Assembly (NCBI RefSeq): GCF_000006765.1
Contig: NC_002516.2
From: Pseudomonas aeruginosa PAO1
Lineage (GTDB): Bacteria > Pseudomonadota > Gammaproteobacteria > Pseudomonadales > Pseudomonadaceae
DNA: 64,000 nucleotides
Direction: 5' to 3' (one strand)
A program made the position numbers and the translations under genes. The notes under the pieces are model-generated. The model was not told the DNA's origin and ran no database searches. It saw nothing but the letters and a program-made list of their open reading frames with translations. Every line of letters starts with the position of its first letter. Position 1 is the stretch's first letter. Of this stretch, positions 46,587 through 53,678 are shown piece after piece.

Positions 46587-47585
46587 TCAGTTCCAGCCGG
46601 CGCGGTCCATCAGGCGAATCGCCTCGGCCTGGCGCTTGCCGGCAACTTCCACCGGGATGCTGTCGGCCTTGAAGCTGCCCCAGCTGGCGACTTCGGCTGA
46701 CGGCGCGACCTGCGGGTTGGCCGGGAATTCCTGGTTGATCCCGGCGAACAGCGCCTGGGCGTCGGGCCCGGTCATCCATTCCACCAGCGCCTTGGCTGCC
46801 TCGGGATGCGGCGCGTGGCGAGTCAGGCCGATGCCCGACAGGTTGACGTGGACGCCGCGGTCGGCCTGGTTCGGCCAGAACAGCTTGACCCGCAGGTTCG
46901 GGTTCTGCTTGTGCAGGCGCCCGTAGTAGTAGGTATTGACGATGCCGACGTCGCACTGGCCGGCGTCCACCGCCTGGATCACCGCGTTGTCGTCGGCGAA
47001 TACGTCGGTGGCCAGGTTGTTCACCCAGCCCTGGAGGATTTCCTCGGTCTTCTGCGCCCCGTGGGTCTCGATCAGGGTCCCGGTCAGCGACTGGTTGTAG
47101 ACCTTCTTCGCCGTGCGCAGGCACAGGCGGCCTTCCCATTGCTTGTCGGCCAGGGCTTCGTAGGTGCTCAGCTCTTCCGGCTTGACCCGCTCGGTGGAGT
47201 AGACGATGGTCCGCGCGCGCAGCGACAGTCCGGTCCAGCTATCGGTGCTGGAACGATACTGCGAGGGAATGTTCCGTTCGATGGTGGCCGACTTGAACGG
47301 TTGCAGCAGGCCCATCTGCTCGGCCTGCCAGAGGTTGCCGGCGTCCACGGTGAGCAGCAGGTCGGCCGGGGTGTTAGCGCCTTCGGCCTTGATCCGCGCC
47401 ATCAGCGGCGCTTCCTTGTCGGTGATGAACTTGACCTTCACGCCGGTCTTGCTGGTGTAGGCATCGAACACCGGCTTGATCAGCTCGTCGATGCGCGAGG
47501 AATACACCACCACTTCGTCGGCGGCCTGGGCCAGGCCGGTGATGCCCAGGGCCAGGGCGGCGAGTAGAGCTTTGCTTGCCTGCAT
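46587..47585 (-). CDS. Fe3+ ABC periplasmic binding protein (FutA/FbpA-like), 332 aa
   Basis: Signal peptide; [33 protein letters not shown]. Confidence 0.9.
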
Positions 47586-47615
47586 GAAGAACAGCCTCGT
47601 CAGCGGAACGTAGGC

Positions 47616-47634
47616 ACGAATGATAAGAAATCTC
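47616..47634. promoter_or_regulatory. Fur-box-like site upstream of the Fe3+ binding-protein gene
   Basis: ACGAATGATAAGAAATCTC, 12/19 match to GATAATGATAATCATTATC. Confidence 0.55.
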
Positions 47635-47652
47635 GCTTGCGAACCCGCGCGA

Positions 47653-48567
47653 CTAAATGTGTCGGGGTGTTTCGCCTGCGTCCAGGCCACCGAGGATGGC
47701 GAGGAACGCCTCCACCGCGGCGCTGCGGCCATGGCGGCGGGTGAAGACGAGGAAATCGGCCAGCGCCTCGGGCTCGGCCAGCGGGCGATAGACGACTCCG
47801 GCCCGGGCCAGCGCGGTGCTGCAACGCGGCACCAGGGCAACGCCCTGGCCGGCCGCGACCAGGGCGATGATCGAGGTGATCTGGCGTCCGGCCGGTCCCC
47901 TCGTCAGCGCCAGCCCGGCCTTCCGGTAGAGGCGCTCGATCAGTTCGTTGAGGCCGGAGCCGTAGTCCAGTGGAAACAGGATCAGCGGCCGATCACGCAG
48001 ATCGTACAGGTCGATCCGCTCTTGCCGCGCCAGCGGATCGCCGTTGGGCACGGCCACCACCAGCGGCTCGCCGCCCAGGGCCAGCACCTCGATGCCGACC
48101 TGGCCTTCCGGCGGCGGCAGGCGCCCCAGCCCCACATCGATGCCGCCTTCGGCGATCTGCGCCCATTGCGCCGCCGAAGCGCCTTCGAGCAGCTCCAGTT
48201 GCACCTCCGGATGGCGCTCGCGGAACAGTCGGATCGCCTCGGTGAACAGGTCCGACAGGGCGATGGAGCTGGCGTAGCCGAGGGTCAGGTGGCCGGCCAG
48301 CCCCTGCGCCAGCTTGCGGGCGAAGCCGGCGGTGCGCTCCAGTTGGTCCAGCAGGGCGCGTGCGTAAGGCAGGAACAGGCTGCCCTCGGCGGTGAGGGTC
48401 ACCGCCCGGCTGGAGCGGTCGAACAGGCGAAAGCCCAGCTCTTCCTCCAGCGCGGATATCTGCCGGGTCAAGGGCGGCTGCGCCATGTGCAGGCGCTGGG
48501 CGGCGCGGCCGAAATGCAGGGTTTCGGCAACGGCTGCGAAGCAGCGCAGGCGGCGTAGGTCGAGCAT
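47653..48567 (-). CDS. LysR-family regulator (AlsR/BenM-like), 304 aa
   Basis: [35 protein letters not shown]. Confidence 0.92.
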
Positions 48568-48663
48568 GCGGTTCCTCGGTATCGATCGGTCCTGAATCGG
48601 TATTGGCCAGCCCGTCGGGAGCACCCCTATAACAGGGGGTTTCTCGTCCAGGCAGAGCGTTCC

Positions 48664-49857
48664 ATGAATTCGTCCCAGGGTTTCCCCCGCCTCGCGCTGT
48701 TTCTCTGCGGTTGCGCTGCGTTCCTCAATCTCTATACCACCCAGGGCATCTTCGACGAACTGGCGGCGAGCTTCCACATCAGCGCCCATCAATCGAACTG
48801 GAGCATCACCGCCACCACCCTGGCGGTGGCCCTCGCCGCGCCCTTCGTCGGCCGGCTCAGCGGCGGCCGCGAGCGCAGCCGGGTGATCGCCTTCGCCGCC
48901 AGCCTGCTCTGCGTGCCCATGCTGCTGGCCGCCCATGCCGGCAGCTTCGCCGCCTTCCTGCTCTGGCGCTTCGCCGAAGGGATGCTGATTCCCCTGCTGT
49001 TCGCCAGCAGCGTGGCCTACATCGGCGAGCGCTGGAGCGGCGGCGCGGTCATCGAGCTGACCAGCCTCTATGTCGCCGGGACCATCCTCGGCGGCTTCGC
49101 CGGACGCTTCCTCACCGGCCTGCTGACCGAGGAGTGGGATTGGCGCGTCGCCTTCCGGATCCTCGCCGGGCTGACCCTGCTCATCGCTGTCGCCATCCGT
49201 GCGCTGCTCCCTGCCAATTCTGGCAGGCACGCGCCCGCACCGGGGAAACGCCCCTTAGTATCCCGTGAACTGTTCCGGGCTCCGCTGCTGTCGTCCTACG
49301 CGGTGGGGTTCTGTGTCCTCTTTTCCCAGGTCGCCATGTTCACCTATATCGGCATCCATCTCAGCCGTCCGCCGTACAGCCTGGACACCGCTCAGCTCGG
49401 CTCGATCTACGCGGTGTTCCTCCTCGCCCTGCTGGTGATTCCCGCCAGCGGCCGCCTGGCCCGCACCCGCCCGCACCGCCAGTTGCTGCTGGGCGCATCG
49501 CTGCTGGGCGTGTGCGGCTCGCTGCTGACCCTGGCGCCGGGCCTGCCGACGATTCTCGTCGGCCTGGCCCTCAGCGCCACCGGCGTGTTCCTCGCACAGT
49601 CCACGGTCAACGCCTTCACCGCCAGCAATGCCGGGACCGACAAGGCCGGTGCCGTCGGCCTCTACCTGACCTGCTACTACGCCGGCGGCAGCCTCGGCGC
49701 GGTACTGCCGGCGCCATTCTGGGAGCGCTGGGGCTGGCCGGGCTGCCTGGGCCTGATCCTCCTGGCCCAGTTGCTGCCGTTGCTTCTGACCCGCTACGGC
49801 TGGTCCGCACCACAGGCCGAACGCGCGGCCCTGCGCGCGTCGCAAGGAAGACCGTAA
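48664..49857 (+). CDS. MFS transporter (YnfM-like), 397 aa
   Basis: About 12 TMs; FLNLYTTQ, GRLS.GRER motif A, YVAGTILGGFAGR, YLTCYYAGGSLG. Confidence 0.9.
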   Translation: MNSSQGFPRLALFLCGCAAFLNLYTTQGIFDELAASFHISAHQSNWSITATTLAVALAAPFVGRLSGGRERSRVIAFAASLLCVPMLLAAHAGSFAAFLLWRFAEGMLIPLLFASSVAYIGERWSGGAVIELTSLYVAGTILGGFAGRFLTGLLTEEWDWRVAFRILAGLTLLIAVAIRALLPANSGRHAPAPGKRPLVSRELFRAPLLSSYAVGFCVLFSQVAMFTYIGIHLSRPPYSLDTAQLGSIYAVFLLALLVIPASGRLARTRPHRQLLLGASLLGVCGSLLTLAPGLPTILVGLALSATGVFLAQSTVNAFTASNAGTDKAGAVGLYLTCYYAGGSLGAVLPAPFWERWGWPGCLGLILLAQLLPLLLTRYGWSAPQAERAALRASQGRP

Positions 49858-49864
49858 CCATCGC

Positions 49865-49879
49865 AAGAACAACAAGAAC
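49865..49879 (+). promoter_or_regulatory. (AAN)5 Hfq/Crc catabolite-activity-type motif beside the RBS
   Basis: AAG AAC AAC AAG AAC immediately 5' of CAGGAGG (49883-49889). Confidence 0.6.
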
Positions 49880-49895
49880 CGACAGGAGGTTAGCC

Positions 49896-50717
49896 ATGAA
49901 CCATGTCATCACCCCCCACAGCAAGCTGCTCGGCGTCATCGAGCCGGTCCTCAACGACATGCCCGCCGGAACCCTGCGCCACGCACTGTTCCGGGCCTTC
50001 TGGGACGAGACGGCGTCGTTGCTGGACATCGAGGACGCCTTCGCCCGGGTCACCGCCCGGCGCCAGGCGGTCGAGCCGCTGCGCAAGTTCTTCGCCAGTT
50101 GGTCGAAGACCAACAACTCGGCGGCCAGCGTTTCCGGACTGGCCAATCGCCTTACCCTGCTGGCCCGTTCGGAACAGGGTTCGGCAGCGGCAGACCAGCT
50201 CTATCGAGCCTGCGGCAGCCTGCAACGGATCACCGACGAAGACCTCGGCGCCCTCGGCAACACCGTGCATGCCGATCTTTTCTACACCATGGCCACCACC
50301 CTTTGCGGCGACGACCGCTGGCTGCTGCGCGAGAACTGCCTGCCTTCGGCGCAGGCGTTCAAGGACTGGACCGACCGCCAGCGCCTGTGCGAGCGCGACC
50401 TGATGCAGGGACTGCTGACCACGCTGGTACACGAGGTCTATACCCACGGCGAGGTGGAGTACATCCACCCGCTGTACAAGGAATGGTTCAGCCGCGACAT
50501 GGGCGTACCCGCCGAACGCGCCCGCGCCACCGTGGCCTGGGTAACGGTGCACACCGGCGGCACCGAGAGCAATCACTTCGCCCACGCCACGGCGGCGGTG
50601 AACGCCTTCGTCGAGGCGATGGAAATCGAGGTGAACGAAGAAGCCGCGCGCAACCTGTTCGGGCTCTACCTGCGCAACAAGGCGCAGGTCATGCGTGACT
50701 GCGCGGCGCTGTTCTGA
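49896..50717 (+). CDS. Heme-oxygenase-like diiron oxidase (HDO) candidate, 273 aa (PA5220-like)
   Basis: E115-x9-H125, E180, H219-x4-E224-x2-H227; largely helical; strong RBS. Confidence 0.7.
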   Translation: MNHVITPHSKLLGVIEPVLNDMPAGTLRHALFRAFWDETASLLDIEDAFARVTARRQAVEPLRKFFASWSKTNNSAASVSGLANRLTLLARSEQGSAAADQLYRACGSLQRITDEDLGALGNTVHADLFYTMATTLCGDDRWLLRENCLPSAQAFKDWTDRQRLCERDLMQGLLTTLVHEVYTHGEVEYIHPLYKEWFSRDMGVPAERARATVAWVTVHTGGTESNHFAHATAAVNAFVEAMEIEVNEEAARNLFGLYLRNKAQVMRDCAALF

Positions 50718-50722
50718 GGACT

Positions 50723-50749
50723 GGCGGCCCTCCCGTCAGGGGGGCCGCC
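50723..50749. terminator. Hairpin between the HDO gene and convergent ubiI
   Basis: GGCGGCCCTCC-cgtca-GGGGGGCCGCC. Confidence 0.6.
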
Positions 50750-50753
50750 CCGC

Positions 50754-51971
50754 TCAGACTCGTGCCAGCATCGGCAGGTCGCCGCTGAGGCCAAGCGCCT
50801 GGCGGACGAACAGCGCCTTCGCCTCGTGATGGCCGTCGACCAGGCGCAGGCCGGCGTTGCGCAGCCAGCGCAGCGGCAACCGGTCGGCCTGGAACAGGCG
50901 CTCGAAGCCTTCCATCGCCGTCATCATGCCCAGGTTGTGCGGCATCCGCCGCCGCTCGAAGCGACTCAGCACGCGTTCGTCGGCAAGCCGTTCGCCGCGC
51001 TCCAGGGCGTGCAACAGGACCTCGGACAGCACCGCCGCATCGAGGAAGCCCAGGTTCACGCCCTGTCCGGCCAGCGGGTGGATGGTGTGCGCAGCATCGC
51101 CGACCAGCGCCAGGCCCGGCTCGACGTAACGCTTGGCGTGCCGCTGGCGCAGCGGGATGCACAGGCGCCGGTCGGCATGCAGGATGGCGCCCAGGCGCTG
51201 TTCGAAGGCTTCGCCGAGGGCGGCGCGGAAGCCATCCTCGTCCAACGCCATCAGGCGTTCTGCCTGTTCCGGGGTGGTCGACCAGACGATCGAGCACCAG
51301 TGCTCGTCGCCGCGGTCCGGCAGGGGCAGGAAGGCCAGCGGACCGTCGTCGGTGAAGCGCTGCCAGGCGGTTGCGCGGTGCGCGTTCTCGCAGCGCACGC
51401 TGGTGACGATGGCGTGGTGCAGGTAATCCCATTCGCGGGTGGCGCAGCCGGCCAGGCGGCGTACCGCCGAGTTGGCGCCGTCGGCGGCGACCACCAGCGG
51501 CGCACGCAGCTGGCGACCGTCGGCCAGGGTCAGCAGCCAGTCGTCGCCGGAGTGGCGCATCTGTTCCAGGCGCGCATTGGCCAGCAGGCCGGTGGTGGAA
51601 TCGTGCAGGCGTTCCAGCAGGGCGTCCTGCACCACCCGGTTCTCGACGATATGGCCGAGTACCTCGGCGTGCACGCTGGCGGCGCTGAAGCCGATCCGCC
51701 CGGTGCCGGAGCCATCCCACACCTGCATCTCGCGATAGGGCTCGGCGCGGCGCGCGACGATGCCGTCCCAGGCATGCAGGCGCTGGAGAATCCGCCGGCT
51801 GGCTTCGGACAGCGCGCTGACCCGCGGCTCGTAGGGCGCCTCCGGCTTGAACGGCGCCACGTCGAGCGAGCCGCCGTCCACCAGCAGCACCTCCAGGCCG
51901 CTGCCCTCCAGGGCCAGGGCCAGGGCGCTACCGACCATGCCGGCGCCGACGATGACCAGATCCGCGTGCAT
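50754..51971 (-). CDS. ubiI: FAD-dependent ubiquinone hydroxylase UbiI/VisC-type, 405 aa
   Basis: IVGAGMVG, RVSAL, AADGANS, GDAAHTIHPLAGQGVNLG. Confidence 0.88.
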   Translation of the reverse strand: MHADLVIVGAGMVGSALALALEGSGLEVLLVDGGSLDVAPFKPEAPYEPRVSALSEASRRILQRLHAWDGIVARRAEPYREMQVWDGSGTGRIGFSAASVHAEVLGHIVENRVVQDALLERLHDSTTGLLANARLEQMRHSGDDWLLTLADGRQLRAPLVVAADGANSAVRRLAGCATREWDYLHHAIVTSVRCENAHRATAWQRFTDDGPLAFLPLPDRGDEHWCSIVWSTTPEQAERLMALDEDGFRAALGEAFEQRLGAILHADRRLCIPLRQRHAKRYVEPGLALVGDAAHTIHPLAGQGVNLGFLDAAVLSEVLLHALERGERLADERVLSRFERRRMPHNLGMMTAMEGFERLFQADRLPLRWLRNAGLRLVDGHHEAKALFVRQALGLSGDLPMLARV

Positions 51972-51999: not shown

Positions 52000-52482
52000 T
52001 CAGGCCGCGTTCCGCAGGCGCGGCTTGAGCCGCACGTACAGGGTTTTCTGAACCCGCGCCACCAGGGTGCCGGCGTCGTCGCGCACTTCGGCGTGCAGCC
52101 GGGGCAGGTACTTCTCGCCGCCGGCGGTCCGCTCGCGGACCTCGTCGAGCAGCTTCTGGTCGATGCTGAAATGCGCATGCACCGGGCCCTTGCCCGGGCT
52201 GACGAACTCGATGTTGGCCGCCTTGTCCCAGACCACGTAGTCGCGGCCCAGGTTCTCCATCAGCATCAGCATGAAGAACGGGTCGGTCATCGCGTAGAGG
52301 CTGCCGCCGAACTGGGTGCCTACATAGTTGCGATTGAGCCGGTTCAGGCCCATGCGCACCCGAACCTCGCGGAAATCGCCAGCGATGTGCCGCACACGGA
52401 TGCCCGCCCCCAGGAAGGGCGGGTAGAGATTCATGGCGAAGCGCAGCAGGCGGGCCTTGCGCGCCCTCGACCAGACCGGCAT
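52000..52482 (-). CDS. DUF4442/YiiD-like hotdog-fold protein, ~160 aa
   Basis: NLYPPFLGAGIRV, NRNYVGTQFGGSLYAMTDPF, YVVWDK. Confidence 0.85.
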   Translation of the reverse strand: MPVWSRARKARLLRFAMNLYPPFLGAGIRVRHIAGDFREVRVRMGLNRLNRNYVGTQFGGSLYAMTDPFFMLMLMENLGRDYVVWDKAANIEFVSPGKGPVHAHFSIDQKLLDEVRERTAGGEKYLPRLHAEVRDDAGTLVARVQKTLYVRLKPRLRNAA

Positions 52483-52486
52483 GGCG

Positions 52487-53671
52487 CTACAGCGGCCGCG
52501 CGCCGAGGCCCATGGCCTGGCGGGCGAACCAGCGCTTGGCCGGCGGCAGCAGGTCGAGCCCGAGCAGGCCGAGGTTGCGCCCGGCGCCGAGCAGCGCGCG
52601 GTCGTTGGAGAACAGCCGGGTCACCCGGTCGGAGAAGCCGACGGTCATCTGCTGGTCCAGGCGCTGCCCATCGAGGTAGCGCTGCAGCACGGCGAACTCG
52701 CCCAGCGGCGCGTCGTCGTGGAGCAGGGCGTCGACCAGCGCCAGGGTGTCGCGCAACGACAGGTTGAAGCCCTGGCCGGCGATGGGGTGCAGACTGTGCG
52801 CAGCGTTGCCCAGCACCACCAGGTGCGGACGCACCTGCTCGCGGGCCTCGACCAGGTGCAAGGGGTAGCAGTGCCGTGCGCCGACCTGGCGGAAGGCGCC
52901 GAGGCGGTAGCCGAAGGCAGCCTGCAGCTCGCCGAGGAAGGCCGCGTCATCGAGGCCACGCAGGCGTTCGGCGTCCTTGCCTGGGCGGGTCCAGATCAGC
53001 GCGCAACGGTTATCCGGCAACGGCAGGAGGGCCATCGGACCGCTGGGGGTGAAGCGCTCGAAGGCCTGCCCGAGGTGCGCCTCGGAGGGCGATACGTTGG
53101 CGATCAGCGCAGTCTGCCGGTACGGCGTCTGCTCCACGGCGATGCCAAGTTGTTCGCGCAGCCCGGAACGACCGCCATCGGCGAGGATCGCCAGCTCGCA
53201 ATCGAGTTGCGTCTCGTCGTCGAGGGTAAGCCGGTAACCGCCCTCCCGGGCTTCCAGGGTCTTCACTTCGGCCGGGCAGTGCCAGCGCACCACCTCGGGG
53301 TCGAGCGCCTTCCACAGGCACTGGCCGAGCCAGGCGTTCTCCACCACGTAGCCCAGCGCCGGCACGCCTTCCTCGATGGCGGTCAGGCGGGTGGCGCCGA
53401 AGCGGCCGCGGTCGGAAACATGGATATGCAGGATCGGCTCGGCGCGCTCGGCGATCGCCGGCCACAGGCCGAGTCGCTCGTAGATCTGCCGGCTGCCGTA
53501 GGACAGCGCCGAAGAGCGGGCGTCGTAGCTGGGCTGGTAGGCGTTGCCGGGGGCGAAGGGTTCGATCAGCACGATCGACCAGCCGCGCTCCCGAGCGCCG
53601 GCCTGCAGGGCCAGCGCCAGCGAGGCGCCGACCAGGCCCCCGCCGATGATCGCCAGGTTGACCTTGCTCAT
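52487..53671 (-). CDS. ubiH: 2-octaprenyl-6-methoxyphenol hydroxylase UbiH, 394 aa
   Basis: IIGGGLVG, DARSSALS, GNAAHSLHPIAGQGFNL; downstream of pepP. Confidence 0.93.
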   Translation of the reverse strand: MSKVNLAIIGGGLVGASLALALQAGARERGWSIVLIEPFAPGNAYQPSYDARSSALSYGSRQIYERLGLWPAIAERAEPILHIHVSDRGRFGATRLTAIEEGVPALGYVVENAWLGQCLWKALDPEVVRWHCPAEVKTLEAREGGYRLTLDDETQLDCELAILADGGRSGLREQLGIAVEQTPYRQTALIANVSPSEAHLGQAFERFTPSGPMALLPLPDNRCALIWTRPGKDAERLRGLDDAAFLGELQAAFGYRLGAFRQVGARHCYPLHLVEAREQVRPHLVVLGNAAHSLHPIAGQGFNLSLRDTLALVDALLHDDAPLGEFAVLQRYLDGQRLDQQMTVGFSDRVTRLFSNDRALLGAGRNLGLLGLDLLPPAKRWFARQAMGLGARPL

Positions 53672-53678
53672 CGTCACC

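Follow-up and report, generated by a model that had tools for sequence, protein, structure and literature searches.

The PA5218-PA5220 locus

We analysed a 64-kb stretch of Pseudomonas aeruginosa PAO1 DNA (hereafter the window, to which all unprefixed coordinates refer), and in it a unit of three genes: one for a LysR-type regulator, a divergent one for a major facilitator superfamily (MFS) transporter and a 273-aa open reading frame (ORF) that we propose encodes a haem oxygenase (HO)-like dimetal oxidase (HDO). The three genes are PA5218, PA5219 and PA5220 of P. aeruginosa PAO1. The locus could be identified as such because the sequence AAGAACAACAAGAA equals, in sequence and position, the CA motif published for PA5220 (PMC3480352). 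ORF calls and translation recovered the arrangement described in a first-pass annotation made from the sequence alone, namely a LysR gene, a divergent MFS gene, the 273-aa ORF and a closing hairpin:

47653..48567, minus strand: LysR-type regulator PA5218, YnfL-like, 304 aa (Pfam: HTH_1 3.7e-23, LysR_substrate 4.1e-44)
48664..49857, plus strand: MFS transporter PA5219, YnfM-like, 397 aa (Pfam: MFS_1 5.8e-41, residues 12-346)
49884..49889, plus strand: ribosome-binding site of PA5220, AGGAGG, 6 nt before the ATG, read from the sequence
49896..50717, plus strand: PA5220, proposed HO-like dimetal oxidase, 273 aa, with putative ligands E115, H125, E180, H219, E224 and H227
50713..50758, no strand assigned: GC-rich hairpin between the stop codons of PA5220 and a ubiquinone hydroxylase gene (outer stem; core stem 50723-50749)

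The divergent LysR and MFS genes are separated by 96 bp, and 38 bp lie between the MFS gene and PA5220. The product of PA5220 appears in a proteomics paper as a 30.5 kDa hypothetical protein. The idea that the cassette forms a compositional island was rejected, its GC content (0.66-0.71) being the same as that of the flanks.

Predicted fold and metal site of PA5220

HDOs are defined by a seven-helix HO fold, and most carry a 3-His/3-carboxylate (3H/3C) set of ligands on core helices 1 (Glu, His), 2 (Glu) and 3 (His, Asp/Glu, His) (PMC13108848, PMC13133933). Around one quarter of them bear a seventh ligand, a Glu on auxiliary helix 2 (2026 review). In the substrate-triggered 3H/3C enzymes, it is the carboxylate of the substrate that completes the metal site. 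An AlphaFold2 model of PA5220, run on a 54-sequence alignment, has a predicted local distance difference test score (pLDDT) of 94.4 and a predicted template modelling score (pTM) of 0.92. It contains 13 helices and no strands, and this all-alpha model agrees with the seven-helix architecture of the HO type. When the model was compared with the PDB using Foldseek, the top 50 matches were almost exclusively HO-fold proteins, with probability 1.00 and template modelling scores on the query (TMq) of 0.53-0.65. These included the TenA homologue 3oql, UndA (4wwj and 6p5q), CADD (1rcw and 8vag), HrmI, PolF, RohS (9pfw), BesC and TenA proteins. The superposition on UndA 6p5q_B spanned 255 columns at 13% identity, with a TMq of 0.65, a corresponding score on the target (TMt) of 0.73 and a root-mean-square deviation of 3.6 A. 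The structural resemblance to TenA reflects the common HO fold. An HO-like fold had been proposed in the first-pass annotation from motif spacing alone, and the confident model and its matches to HO-like dimetal proteins bear this out.

The translation places E115, H125, E180, H219, E224 and H227 exactly where they had been noted, including the segment TDEDLGALGNTVH. Among 54 close relatives, E115, H179, E186 and H227 are invariant, and H125, E180, H184, E188, H219, E224 and H230 are each kept in at least 90%. In a wider set of 64 relatives, reaching down to 17% identity, the six putative ligands rank among the best-conserved polar columns: E115 (49 Glu and 7 Asp), H125 (57), E180 (59), H219 (59), E224 (54 Glu and 3 Asp) and H227 (55). 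Other columns conserved at this depth are W142 (64), E186 (61), R85 (60) and D116 (58), and H179, H184, E188 and H230 are specific to the subfamily. In the model, E115/H125, E180 and H219/E224/H227 fall on three successive predicted helical elements, together giving a putative set of three His and three carboxylates.

The spacing of these residues follows that of the diiron N-oxygenases SznF and RohS in its first half, with an E-x9-H pair and a second Glu 65 residues from the first (66 in SznF/RohS); the triad begins 39 residues further on (28-30 in SznF/RohS). In PA5220, the third motif reads H219-TGGT-E224-SN-H227, that is HxxxxExxH, and the family consensus is VHxGxTExxHF. The HDO layout put forward in the first-pass annotation stands as regards order and spacing, and its residues are conserved, but its last motif is HxxxxExxH and not HxxxD/ExxH. 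Predicted helix breaks at 117-124 and 220-222, as well as the lowest internal pLDDT blocks (111-130 and 201-230), fall on the ligand-bearing segments. Core helices 1 and 3 are likewise interrupted or unwound in metal-free SznF and RohS. Because the predicted helix is broken at 220-222, the additional residue of the triad may be accommodated in an unwound turn of the type described for metal-free HDOs.

Position 89, which lies 26 residues before E115 and where spacing would put the seventh Glu of SznF/RohS, is a Leu in PA5220; an Arg is found nearby (Arg85, 60 of the 64 relatives). Since there is no carboxylate at this position, PA5220 may group by spacing with the substrate-triggered 3H/3C enzymes UndA, BesC and AetD. 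Taken as a whole, we regard an HO-like fold with a dimetal-type site as highly probable, and it is probable, with somewhat less confidence, that PA5220 is an O2-activating enzyme.

A family outside the domain libraries

The first-pass annotation had called the 273-aa protein unannotated-looking, and PA5220 indeed had no match in Pfam, NCBIfam or the PDB sequences. Pfam and NCBIfam assigned no family to PA5220 or its 64 relatives, and no TENA_THI-4 match was found in any of them. PF14518 (Haem_oxygenas_2) matched one of the 64 family members (E 0.044), and not PA5220 itself. This failure shows sequence distance, and recognition by a sequence model is not a superfamily-defining feature. Three profiles built from the family (A1, A2 and A3) retrieved no HDO from the PDB at E-values up to 10, returning either nothing or chance matches (P450, catechol O-methyltransferase).

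A word-indexed search retrieved 121 clusters, all named 'hypothetical' and all lacking a Pfam domain; their sources are Pseudomonas, Burkholderia, Trinickia, Paraburkholderia, Streptomyces, Thermoanaerobaculia and Niveispirillum, as well as metagenomes. An exhaustive HMMER search of 1.84 billion representatives gave 132 clusters (50% identity) at E <= 1e-3, and a scan of species-representative genomes gave 164 loci, of which the best 80 were kept for neighbourhood work. The PA5220 family is therefore small and previously unclassified, and is seen by no domain library. Annotation-based surveys of the superfamily may have missed it because it is both invisible to Pfam/NCBIfam and small. In a separate study, in vivo cross-linking to Hcp1, the tube protein of type VI secretion, enriched PA5220 5.3-fold alongside many metabolic enzymes (PMC8262886). 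This cross-linking is probably background, although it still shows that PA5220 is made and is cytosolic.

The LysR-MFS pair and its candidate operator

PA5218 has the two domains of a LysR-type regulator, HTH_1 and the substrate domain, and lies divergent from its presumed target next to a conserved operator-like motif. It resembles YnfL of Escherichia coli (37% identity over 289 aa, E 2e-56), whose divergent neighbour YnfM resembles PA5219 (29% identity over 373 aa, E 3e-36). Together with the MFS_1 domain, this similarity agrees with the earlier description of the transporter as YnfM-like. Against the NCBIfam subfamilies, every match of PA5219 was far under its cutoff, and a PDB sequence search with the protein found no match. 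Two features of the intergenic region were conserved:

48578..48606, no strand assigned: operator-like motif GGTATCGATCGGTCCTGAATCGGTATTGG, candidate LysR site in the LysR/MFS intergenic region
48628..48633, plus strand: -10-like hexamer TATAAC (TATAAA in relatives), candidate promoter of the MFS operon, in conserved intergenic alignment columns

The pattern GGTAT-N2-ATCGGTC-N-GAA-N-T-N-GGTATTGG shows at least 85% conservation over 29 loci of Pseudomonas, Azorhizophilus, Burkholderia and Trinickia. It consists of two GGTAT repeats around ATCGGTC..GAA, and such conservation is unusually strong for a LysR operator. TATAAA sits about 20-30 bp past the motif, and both are conserved across genera. 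A LysR operator and the promoter under its control would be expected to look like this, and the motif is accordingly a candidate binding site for PA5218. A generic sigma-70 promoter scan over 47400-50900 called no promoter.

The E. coli ynfL and ynfM genes are arranged head to head in the same way as PA5218 and PA5219. There, however, the gene after ynfM is asr and not an enzyme gene, and the operator sequence of Pseudomonas and Burkholderia is not visible in the ynfL-ynfM intergenic region. The PA5218-PA5220 unit can be read as a YnfL/YnfM-type pair to which an enzyme has been appended. A transposon/biosensor screen with arabinose as the inducer took PA5219 as an arabinose transport system on account of an enrichment of insertions in its dim population (PMC7857532), a hint that the transporter can move a sugar or the inducer.

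Conservation of the cassette and its neighbourhoods

The LysR/MFS/enzyme triplet was present in 34 of 35 other loci from Pseudomonas, Azorhizophilus, Burkholderia, Trinickia and Glaciimonas. In these loci (L002-L034 and L036), which represent 34 other species, a LysR gene (45-66% identity) and an MFS gene (47-65%) lie directly upstream of the enzyme gene (67-77%), and none of them is located between binding-protein and ubiquinone hydroxylase genes, as the cassette is in P. aeruginosa. The arrangement exceeds chance, and the three genes are a conserved unit. The genes on either side in P. aeruginosa are:

46587..47585: solute-binding protein of an ATP-binding cassette (ABC) system, flank on the LysR side
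50754-51971, convergent with PA5220: ubiquinone hydroxylase gene, flank on the PA5220 side (NF004318, 840 bits against a cutoff of 653)
52000-52482, on the same strand as the ubiquinone hydroxylase genes at 50754-51971 and 52487-53677, between which it lies: DUF4442 protein (hotdog/thioesterase-like), 160 aa

The NF004318 match confirms the ubiquinone-gene neighbour named in the first-pass annotation, and the stretch beyond this first hydroxylase encodes the DUF4442 protein, UbiH and PepP. The closing hairpin also holds up, with a folding energy of -34.8 kcal/mol (z = -3.54) that none of 200 shuffled sequences equalled. It has no T tract, for which reason a terminator scan made no call there, and is flanked by convergent stop codons at 50717 and 50754.

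The unit had been described as a minimal one-enzyme pathway, and this is accurate for P. aeruginosa, where no further biosynthetic genes are attached to the cassette. It does not extend to most relatives, in which the cassette heads longer same-strand operons. Annotation of the downstream genes on gene maps with Pfam and NCBIfam distinguished two continuations and a third group of triplet loci with nothing recognisable downstream. One continuation, of a phosphonate type, comprises a second MFS transporter, an aspartate-type aminotransferase, a paralogue 27% identical to the enzyme, sometimes a fumarase/aspartase-type lyase, and a phosphoenolpyruvate (PEP) mutase. It was found in about 20 pseudomonads, among them P. 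lactis, P. fluorescens, P. viridiflava and P. asturiensis, and in a Burkholderia (e.g. L010 6858-11152, L033 6830-12643 and L017 3044-7669, and about 17 more loci). The PEP mutase is genuine (TIGR02320, 406.7 bits against a cutoff of 319.55; EDKx5NS motif), and the paralogue keeps all six putative ligands. This module looks like an uncharacterised phosphonate cluster of the phosphonoalanine type that holds an HDO-like enzyme. A lead to the dinuclear-iron flavophos/PsfC system of Burkholderia and Pseudomonas phosphonate clusters was rejected, as that pathway runs via 2-phosphonomethylmalate and its genes differ. The other continuation encodes an ATP-grasp ligase, an AbrB-family membrane protein, a 4-hydroxy-2-oxovalerate aldolase, an acylating acetaldehyde dehydrogenase and an aminotransferase. 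It occurs in P. antarctica, P. entomophila, P. soli and others (L027 5995-12506, L029, L030 and L034) and looks like a route to a non-proteinogenic amino acid or a dipeptide.

Outside the triplet clade, 37 loci from Bacteroidota, Lysobacterales, Chromobacterium and sphingomonads share a tight four-gene operon made up of the family member, an ATP-grasp-like protein (413 aa, no solid Pfam match), a GT2 glycosyltransferase and a PaaK-like adenylate-forming enzyme. In a few of them, e.g. Chromobacterium, the glycosyltransferase is missing from the gene maps. The operon is seen in Pedobacter, Mucilaginibacter, Flavobacterium, Tenacibaculum and Lysobacterales (among L040-L080, e.g. L050 5992-10150 and L070 5923-10222). 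On plasmid pn1 of Nostoc sp. UHCC 0926 (L083 6905-9980), a 27%-identical member overlaps the start of a gene for an adenylation-thiolation didomain. An Azospirillum plasmid (L082 6181-9088) carries a divergent GntR/FCD regulator, a family member with 32% identity and a non-orthologous MFS transporter, and metagenomic fusions (P0154, P0176, P0190, P0169 and P0127) join an FCD domain to the family domain, once with an additional N-terminal TIR domain; one carries a DegT aminotransferase. The regulator-enzyme-transporter logic has thus arisen independently at least twice. In a maximum-likelihood tree, gene context follows clade (7 label changes, compared with 50.8 after shuffling), and the paralogue clade is supported at 100/100. 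Every one of the recurrent partners has an amino or a carboxyl group as its point of attack, and on this basis the substrate appears to be a small metabolite with a carboxylate, an amino acid being most likely.

Regulation in P. aeruginosa and the reduced locus of P. paraeruginosa

The first-pass annotation had the LysR protein sensing the metabolite. This covers only half of the regulation, since RhlR, RpoS and Crc inputs have been published. PA5220 is listed as quorum-controlled in Table S1 of Schuster and Greenberg, where acyl-homoserine lactone addition induced it 2.6-fold, RhlR overexpression 14-fold and RpoS overexpression 5.4-fold, with no induction by LasR overexpression; the net quorum-dependent induction in stationary phase was 15-fold (PMC2018727). 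The same profile is shown there by hcnABC, rhlAB and the PA3327 cluster (PMC2018727). Other studies also place PA5220 among quorum-sensing-dependent changes. The 138-gene core lasR regulon of clinical isolates includes PA14_68930/68940. These are probably PA5219/PA5220. Two sequence elements are relevant to this control:

49209..49228, plus strand: las/rhl-box-like palindrome CCCTGCCAATTCTGGCAGGC, CT-N12-AG, candidate RhlR site within the MFS coding sequence
49865..49878, plus strand: CA motif AAGAACAACAAGAA, target of catabolite repression by Crc/Hfq, occupying -31 to -18 relative to the start codon of PA5220

The palindrome is perfect (7+7) and lies 668 bp before the start of PA5220. It has the form of the CT(N12)AG las/rhl-box signature (PMC2018727), a 20-bp dyad upstream of a quorum-activated gene, and is therefore a candidate site by sequence. 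A lasB-operator-like 20-mer served as the reference for a scan of the window, in which CCCTGCCAATTCTGGCAGGC was the sole match at three or fewer mismatches, with 0 expected by chance; a literature search found no paper giving this exact 20-mer, and the CT-N12-AG definition alone is cited here. Apart from an MFS remnant in P. paraeruginosa, the palindrome was absent from every fetched locus, as expected because those species are without Las/Rhl. PA5220 has been published as a Crc target with the same CA motif at the same position, and its transcript changed in that study of CbrAB/Crc (PMC3480352).

In P. paraeruginosa ATCC 9027, the same chromosomal site (L001 5442-6000, corresponding to 47586-49895 of the window) has undergone two deletions: the first took out the LysR gene together with the 5' half of the MFS gene, and the second cut off the 3' end of the latter. 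An MFS piece of about 350 bp that bears the palindrome is retained, as are the CA motif, the ribosome-binding site and the enzyme gene, which is intact (95% identity). The three genes are thus not obligatorily coupled, given that the enzyme is kept here without the LysR gene or a working MFS gene. Taken together, the RhlR data, the palindrome and this retention suggest that PA5220 is transcribed from an RhlR-responsive promoter of its own within PA5219, with the palindrome as the putative binding site, and that the enzyme can serve a purpose where transporter and LysR protein are absent.

Proposed function and alternative explanations

On this evidence, our reading is that PA5220 is an HO-like dimetal oxidase within a conserved LysR/MFS/enzyme unit, that it acts on an amino-acid-type substrate and that it is under RhlR, RpoS and Crc control. 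We put the probability of this combined reading at roughly 60%. The genes, the predicted fold, the conserved residues, the synteny and the positions of the motifs come from the present analysis and the expression responses from publications; the binding of metals, the chemistry with O2, the class of substrate, the direction of transport and the assignment of proteins to binding sites are parts that we infer. The cytosolic enzyme, most likely a diiron oxidase or oxygenase, would bind two Fe (or Fe/Mn) through E115 and H125 on core helix 1, E180 on core helix 2 and H219, E224 and H227 on core helix 3, with helices 1 and 3 interrupted. Binding of a carboxylate substrate would lead to a peroxo intermediate, and the carboxylate of the substrate may itself complete the metal site. 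O2 would then be used on the substrate for N-oxygenation, desaturation, C-C cleavage or a rearrangement. PA5219 would export the product or import the substrate, and PA5218 would adjust expression of the operon to a ligand across the conserved operator. At high cell density, RhlR and RpoS would raise PA5220, probably via the las/rhl box inside the MFS gene, which would let the enzyme be expressed on its own, and while preferred carbon sources are present Crc/Hfq would block its translation at the CA motif.

Whether the product is an exported secondary metabolite is a closer question, to which we would give slightly less than an even chance. A bolder and rather unlikely version is that PA5220 alone turns a common amino acid or other carboxylate into an unrecognised, RhlR-controlled and exported metabolite, possibly volatile, by a new type of HDO reaction at the HxxxxExxH site, and that elsewhere the family feeds dipeptide-type or phosphonate products.

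Several observations weigh against the dimetal oxidase and its coupling to the cassette. The Foldseek E-values are just 6e-4 to a few times 1e-2, and the best single match is labelled a TenA homologue (3oql). The third motif is one residue longer than the canonical HxxxD/ExxH. Searches of Pfam, NCBIfam and the PDB with single sequences and the three profiles gave no sequence-level tie to any characterised HDO, and in 13 papers that mention PA5220 it is given no function, metabolite, phenotype or activity. The published arrays give PA5220, and not PA5219, as quorum-controlled (PMC2018727), a listing that an internal CCCTGCCAATTCTGGCAGGC site may explain, and in P. paraeruginosa the enzyme persists without a LysR or working MFS gene.

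The genes could instead form a resistance or detoxification cassette, in which the enzyme would inactivate an antimetabolite, either resembling an amino acid or a phosphonate, that competitors release or that, where the strain is itself a producer, comes from the adjacent gene cluster; the transporter would expel the compound or its oxidised product, and the LysR protein would sense it. A LysR gene with a divergent efflux pump is the classic layout of inducible efflux, and the triplet directly abuts the PEP-mutase module in about 20 pseudomonads and a Burkholderia. Self-resistance genes are often located at the margins of clusters and spread independently of them, which fits the arrangement in P. 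aeruginosa. However, the same head also precedes the unrelated ATP-grasp/aldolase/aminotransferase tail, on one strand and with short gaps, like a single biosynthetic operon, and the presence of the paralogue inside the phosphonate module suggests that the family functions in biosynthesis. RhlR induction groups PA5220 with secondary-metabolite genes, and the P. paraeruginosa enzyme survives without the pump. We consider detoxification improbable, and a catabolic or salvage role still more so. In the latter, the transporter would import a less-preferred nutrient, the enzyme would carry out its first oxidative step and the LysR protein would induce the unit on the substrate. The absence of downstream catabolic enzymes counts against this, as do the biosynthetic roles of the characterised HDOs (2026 review) and the biosynthesis-type ligases and aminotransferases that accompany the family elsewhere, and control by quorum sensing and stationary phase fits secondary metabolism. 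Its support comes from regulation and transport: the Crc/Hfq CA motif and the transcript changes of PA5220 are typical of genes for non-preferred substrates (PMC3480352), a LysR-type regulator with a divergent operon is typical of catabolic operons, and PA5219 was treated as an arabinose transporter on the basis of annotation and transposon enrichment (PMC7857532).

Two further explanations were considered. PA5220 might be a stress-protective factor that acts by metal sequestration, scavenging of reactive oxygen or synthesis of a protectant. The precedent is DtpC, an orphan HDO-like protein of Acinetobacter with an E-x9-H motif that is needed to limit oxidative damage, and a role of this kind would suit the 5.4-fold rise of PA5220 on RpoS overexpression, its rise in stationary phase and its persistence alone in P. 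paraeruginosa. The conserved association of the enzyme with a transporter and a dedicated regulator, and with ligases and aminotransferases in other clades, points instead to a small-molecule substrate and product, which leaves this explanation very improbable. Least probable of all is a metal-free HO-fold protein (TenA-, PqqC- or haem oxygenase-like) or a mononuclear-iron enzyme like FlcD or HamA. The HO fold does support cofactor-free and mononuclear chemistries, and the best Foldseek match is a TenA homologue, with several TenA structures listed; yet the full 3H/3C set is conserved, including the third-helix Glu and the second His, positions that are lost in mononuclear variants, and no TENA_THI-4 or haem oxygenase Pfam match was found.

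Implications

Over 10,000 proteins are predicted to belong to the HDO superfamily; about a dozen have been characterised and have known reactions, and nearly each of these revealed new chemistry (2026 review). PA5220 belongs to the quorum-sensing regulon of a major opportunistic pathogen and has been 'hypothetical' for more than 20 years. Its assignment as an O2-activating dimetal enzyme provides a concrete biochemical hypothesis that can be tested. The stand-alone cassette, the ATP-grasp/aldolase/aminotransferase operon, the PEP-mutase module with its paralogue and the four-gene operon of Bacteroidota offer independent routes to the substrate. With these genomic handles, PA5220 is a tractable target for deorphanisation and a candidate source of an undiscovered bacterial small molecule.

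Comparison with known enzymes

The fluopsin C enzymes FlcD and FlcE also belong to the HDO superfamily, occur in P. aeruginosa as well and make a secreted bioactive small molecule. Unlike PA5220, they are part of a five-gene, copper-responsive pathway, FlcD is described as altered in its metal nuclearity, and no sequence relationship of the two to PA5220 was detected. DtpC of Acinetobacter baumannii resembles PA5220 in being HDO-like by predicted structure and conserved ligands (E143-x9-H153 and H232), in being chemically uncharacterised and in its expression in stationary phase or under stress. DtpC, however, is a larger protein in which the HDO-like part makes up a single domain, a transporter/regulator cassette has not been reported for it, and the residue spacing does not suggest homology to PA5220.

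The layout of the proposed site is closest to that described for SznF (central domain) and RohS. Their ligands are E215, H225, E281, H311, D315 and H318, with E189 as the seventh, in SznF, and E124, H134, E190, H218, D222 and H225, with E98 as the seventh, in RohS. Both diiron N-oxygenases share with the proposed PA5220 structure an HO-like fold, an E-x9-H pair on an interrupted core helix 1, a single Glu on core helix 2 some 65 residues on and then a His/carboxylate/His triad on a flexible helix 3. They differ in that the triad is HxxxDxxH and not HxxxxExxH with a Glu, in that PA5220 has no carboxylate at the seventh-ligand spacing and no detectable sequence similarity to them, and in that SznF and RohS belong to multi-gene antibiotic pathways.

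UndA, the 1-undecene synthase of Pseudomonas, gave the best structural superposition with the PA5220 model. It is a 3H/3C enzyme with no seventh protein ligand and is substrate-triggered. Its first motif is ExxH, compared with E-x9-H in PA5220, it has no known dedicated MFS or LysR partners, and its substrate is a fatty acid, whereas the partners of the PA5220 family point to amino acids. UndA is nevertheless a single-gene HDO of Pseudomonas whose reaction turns lauric acid, a primary metabolite, into a volatile that is released, and the same logic is proposed here for PA5220. What is already known is the HDO superfamily itself, and what is new is an unrecognised family, a variant of the third-helix motif and the placing there of a long-standing hypothetical gene of P. 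aeruginosa.

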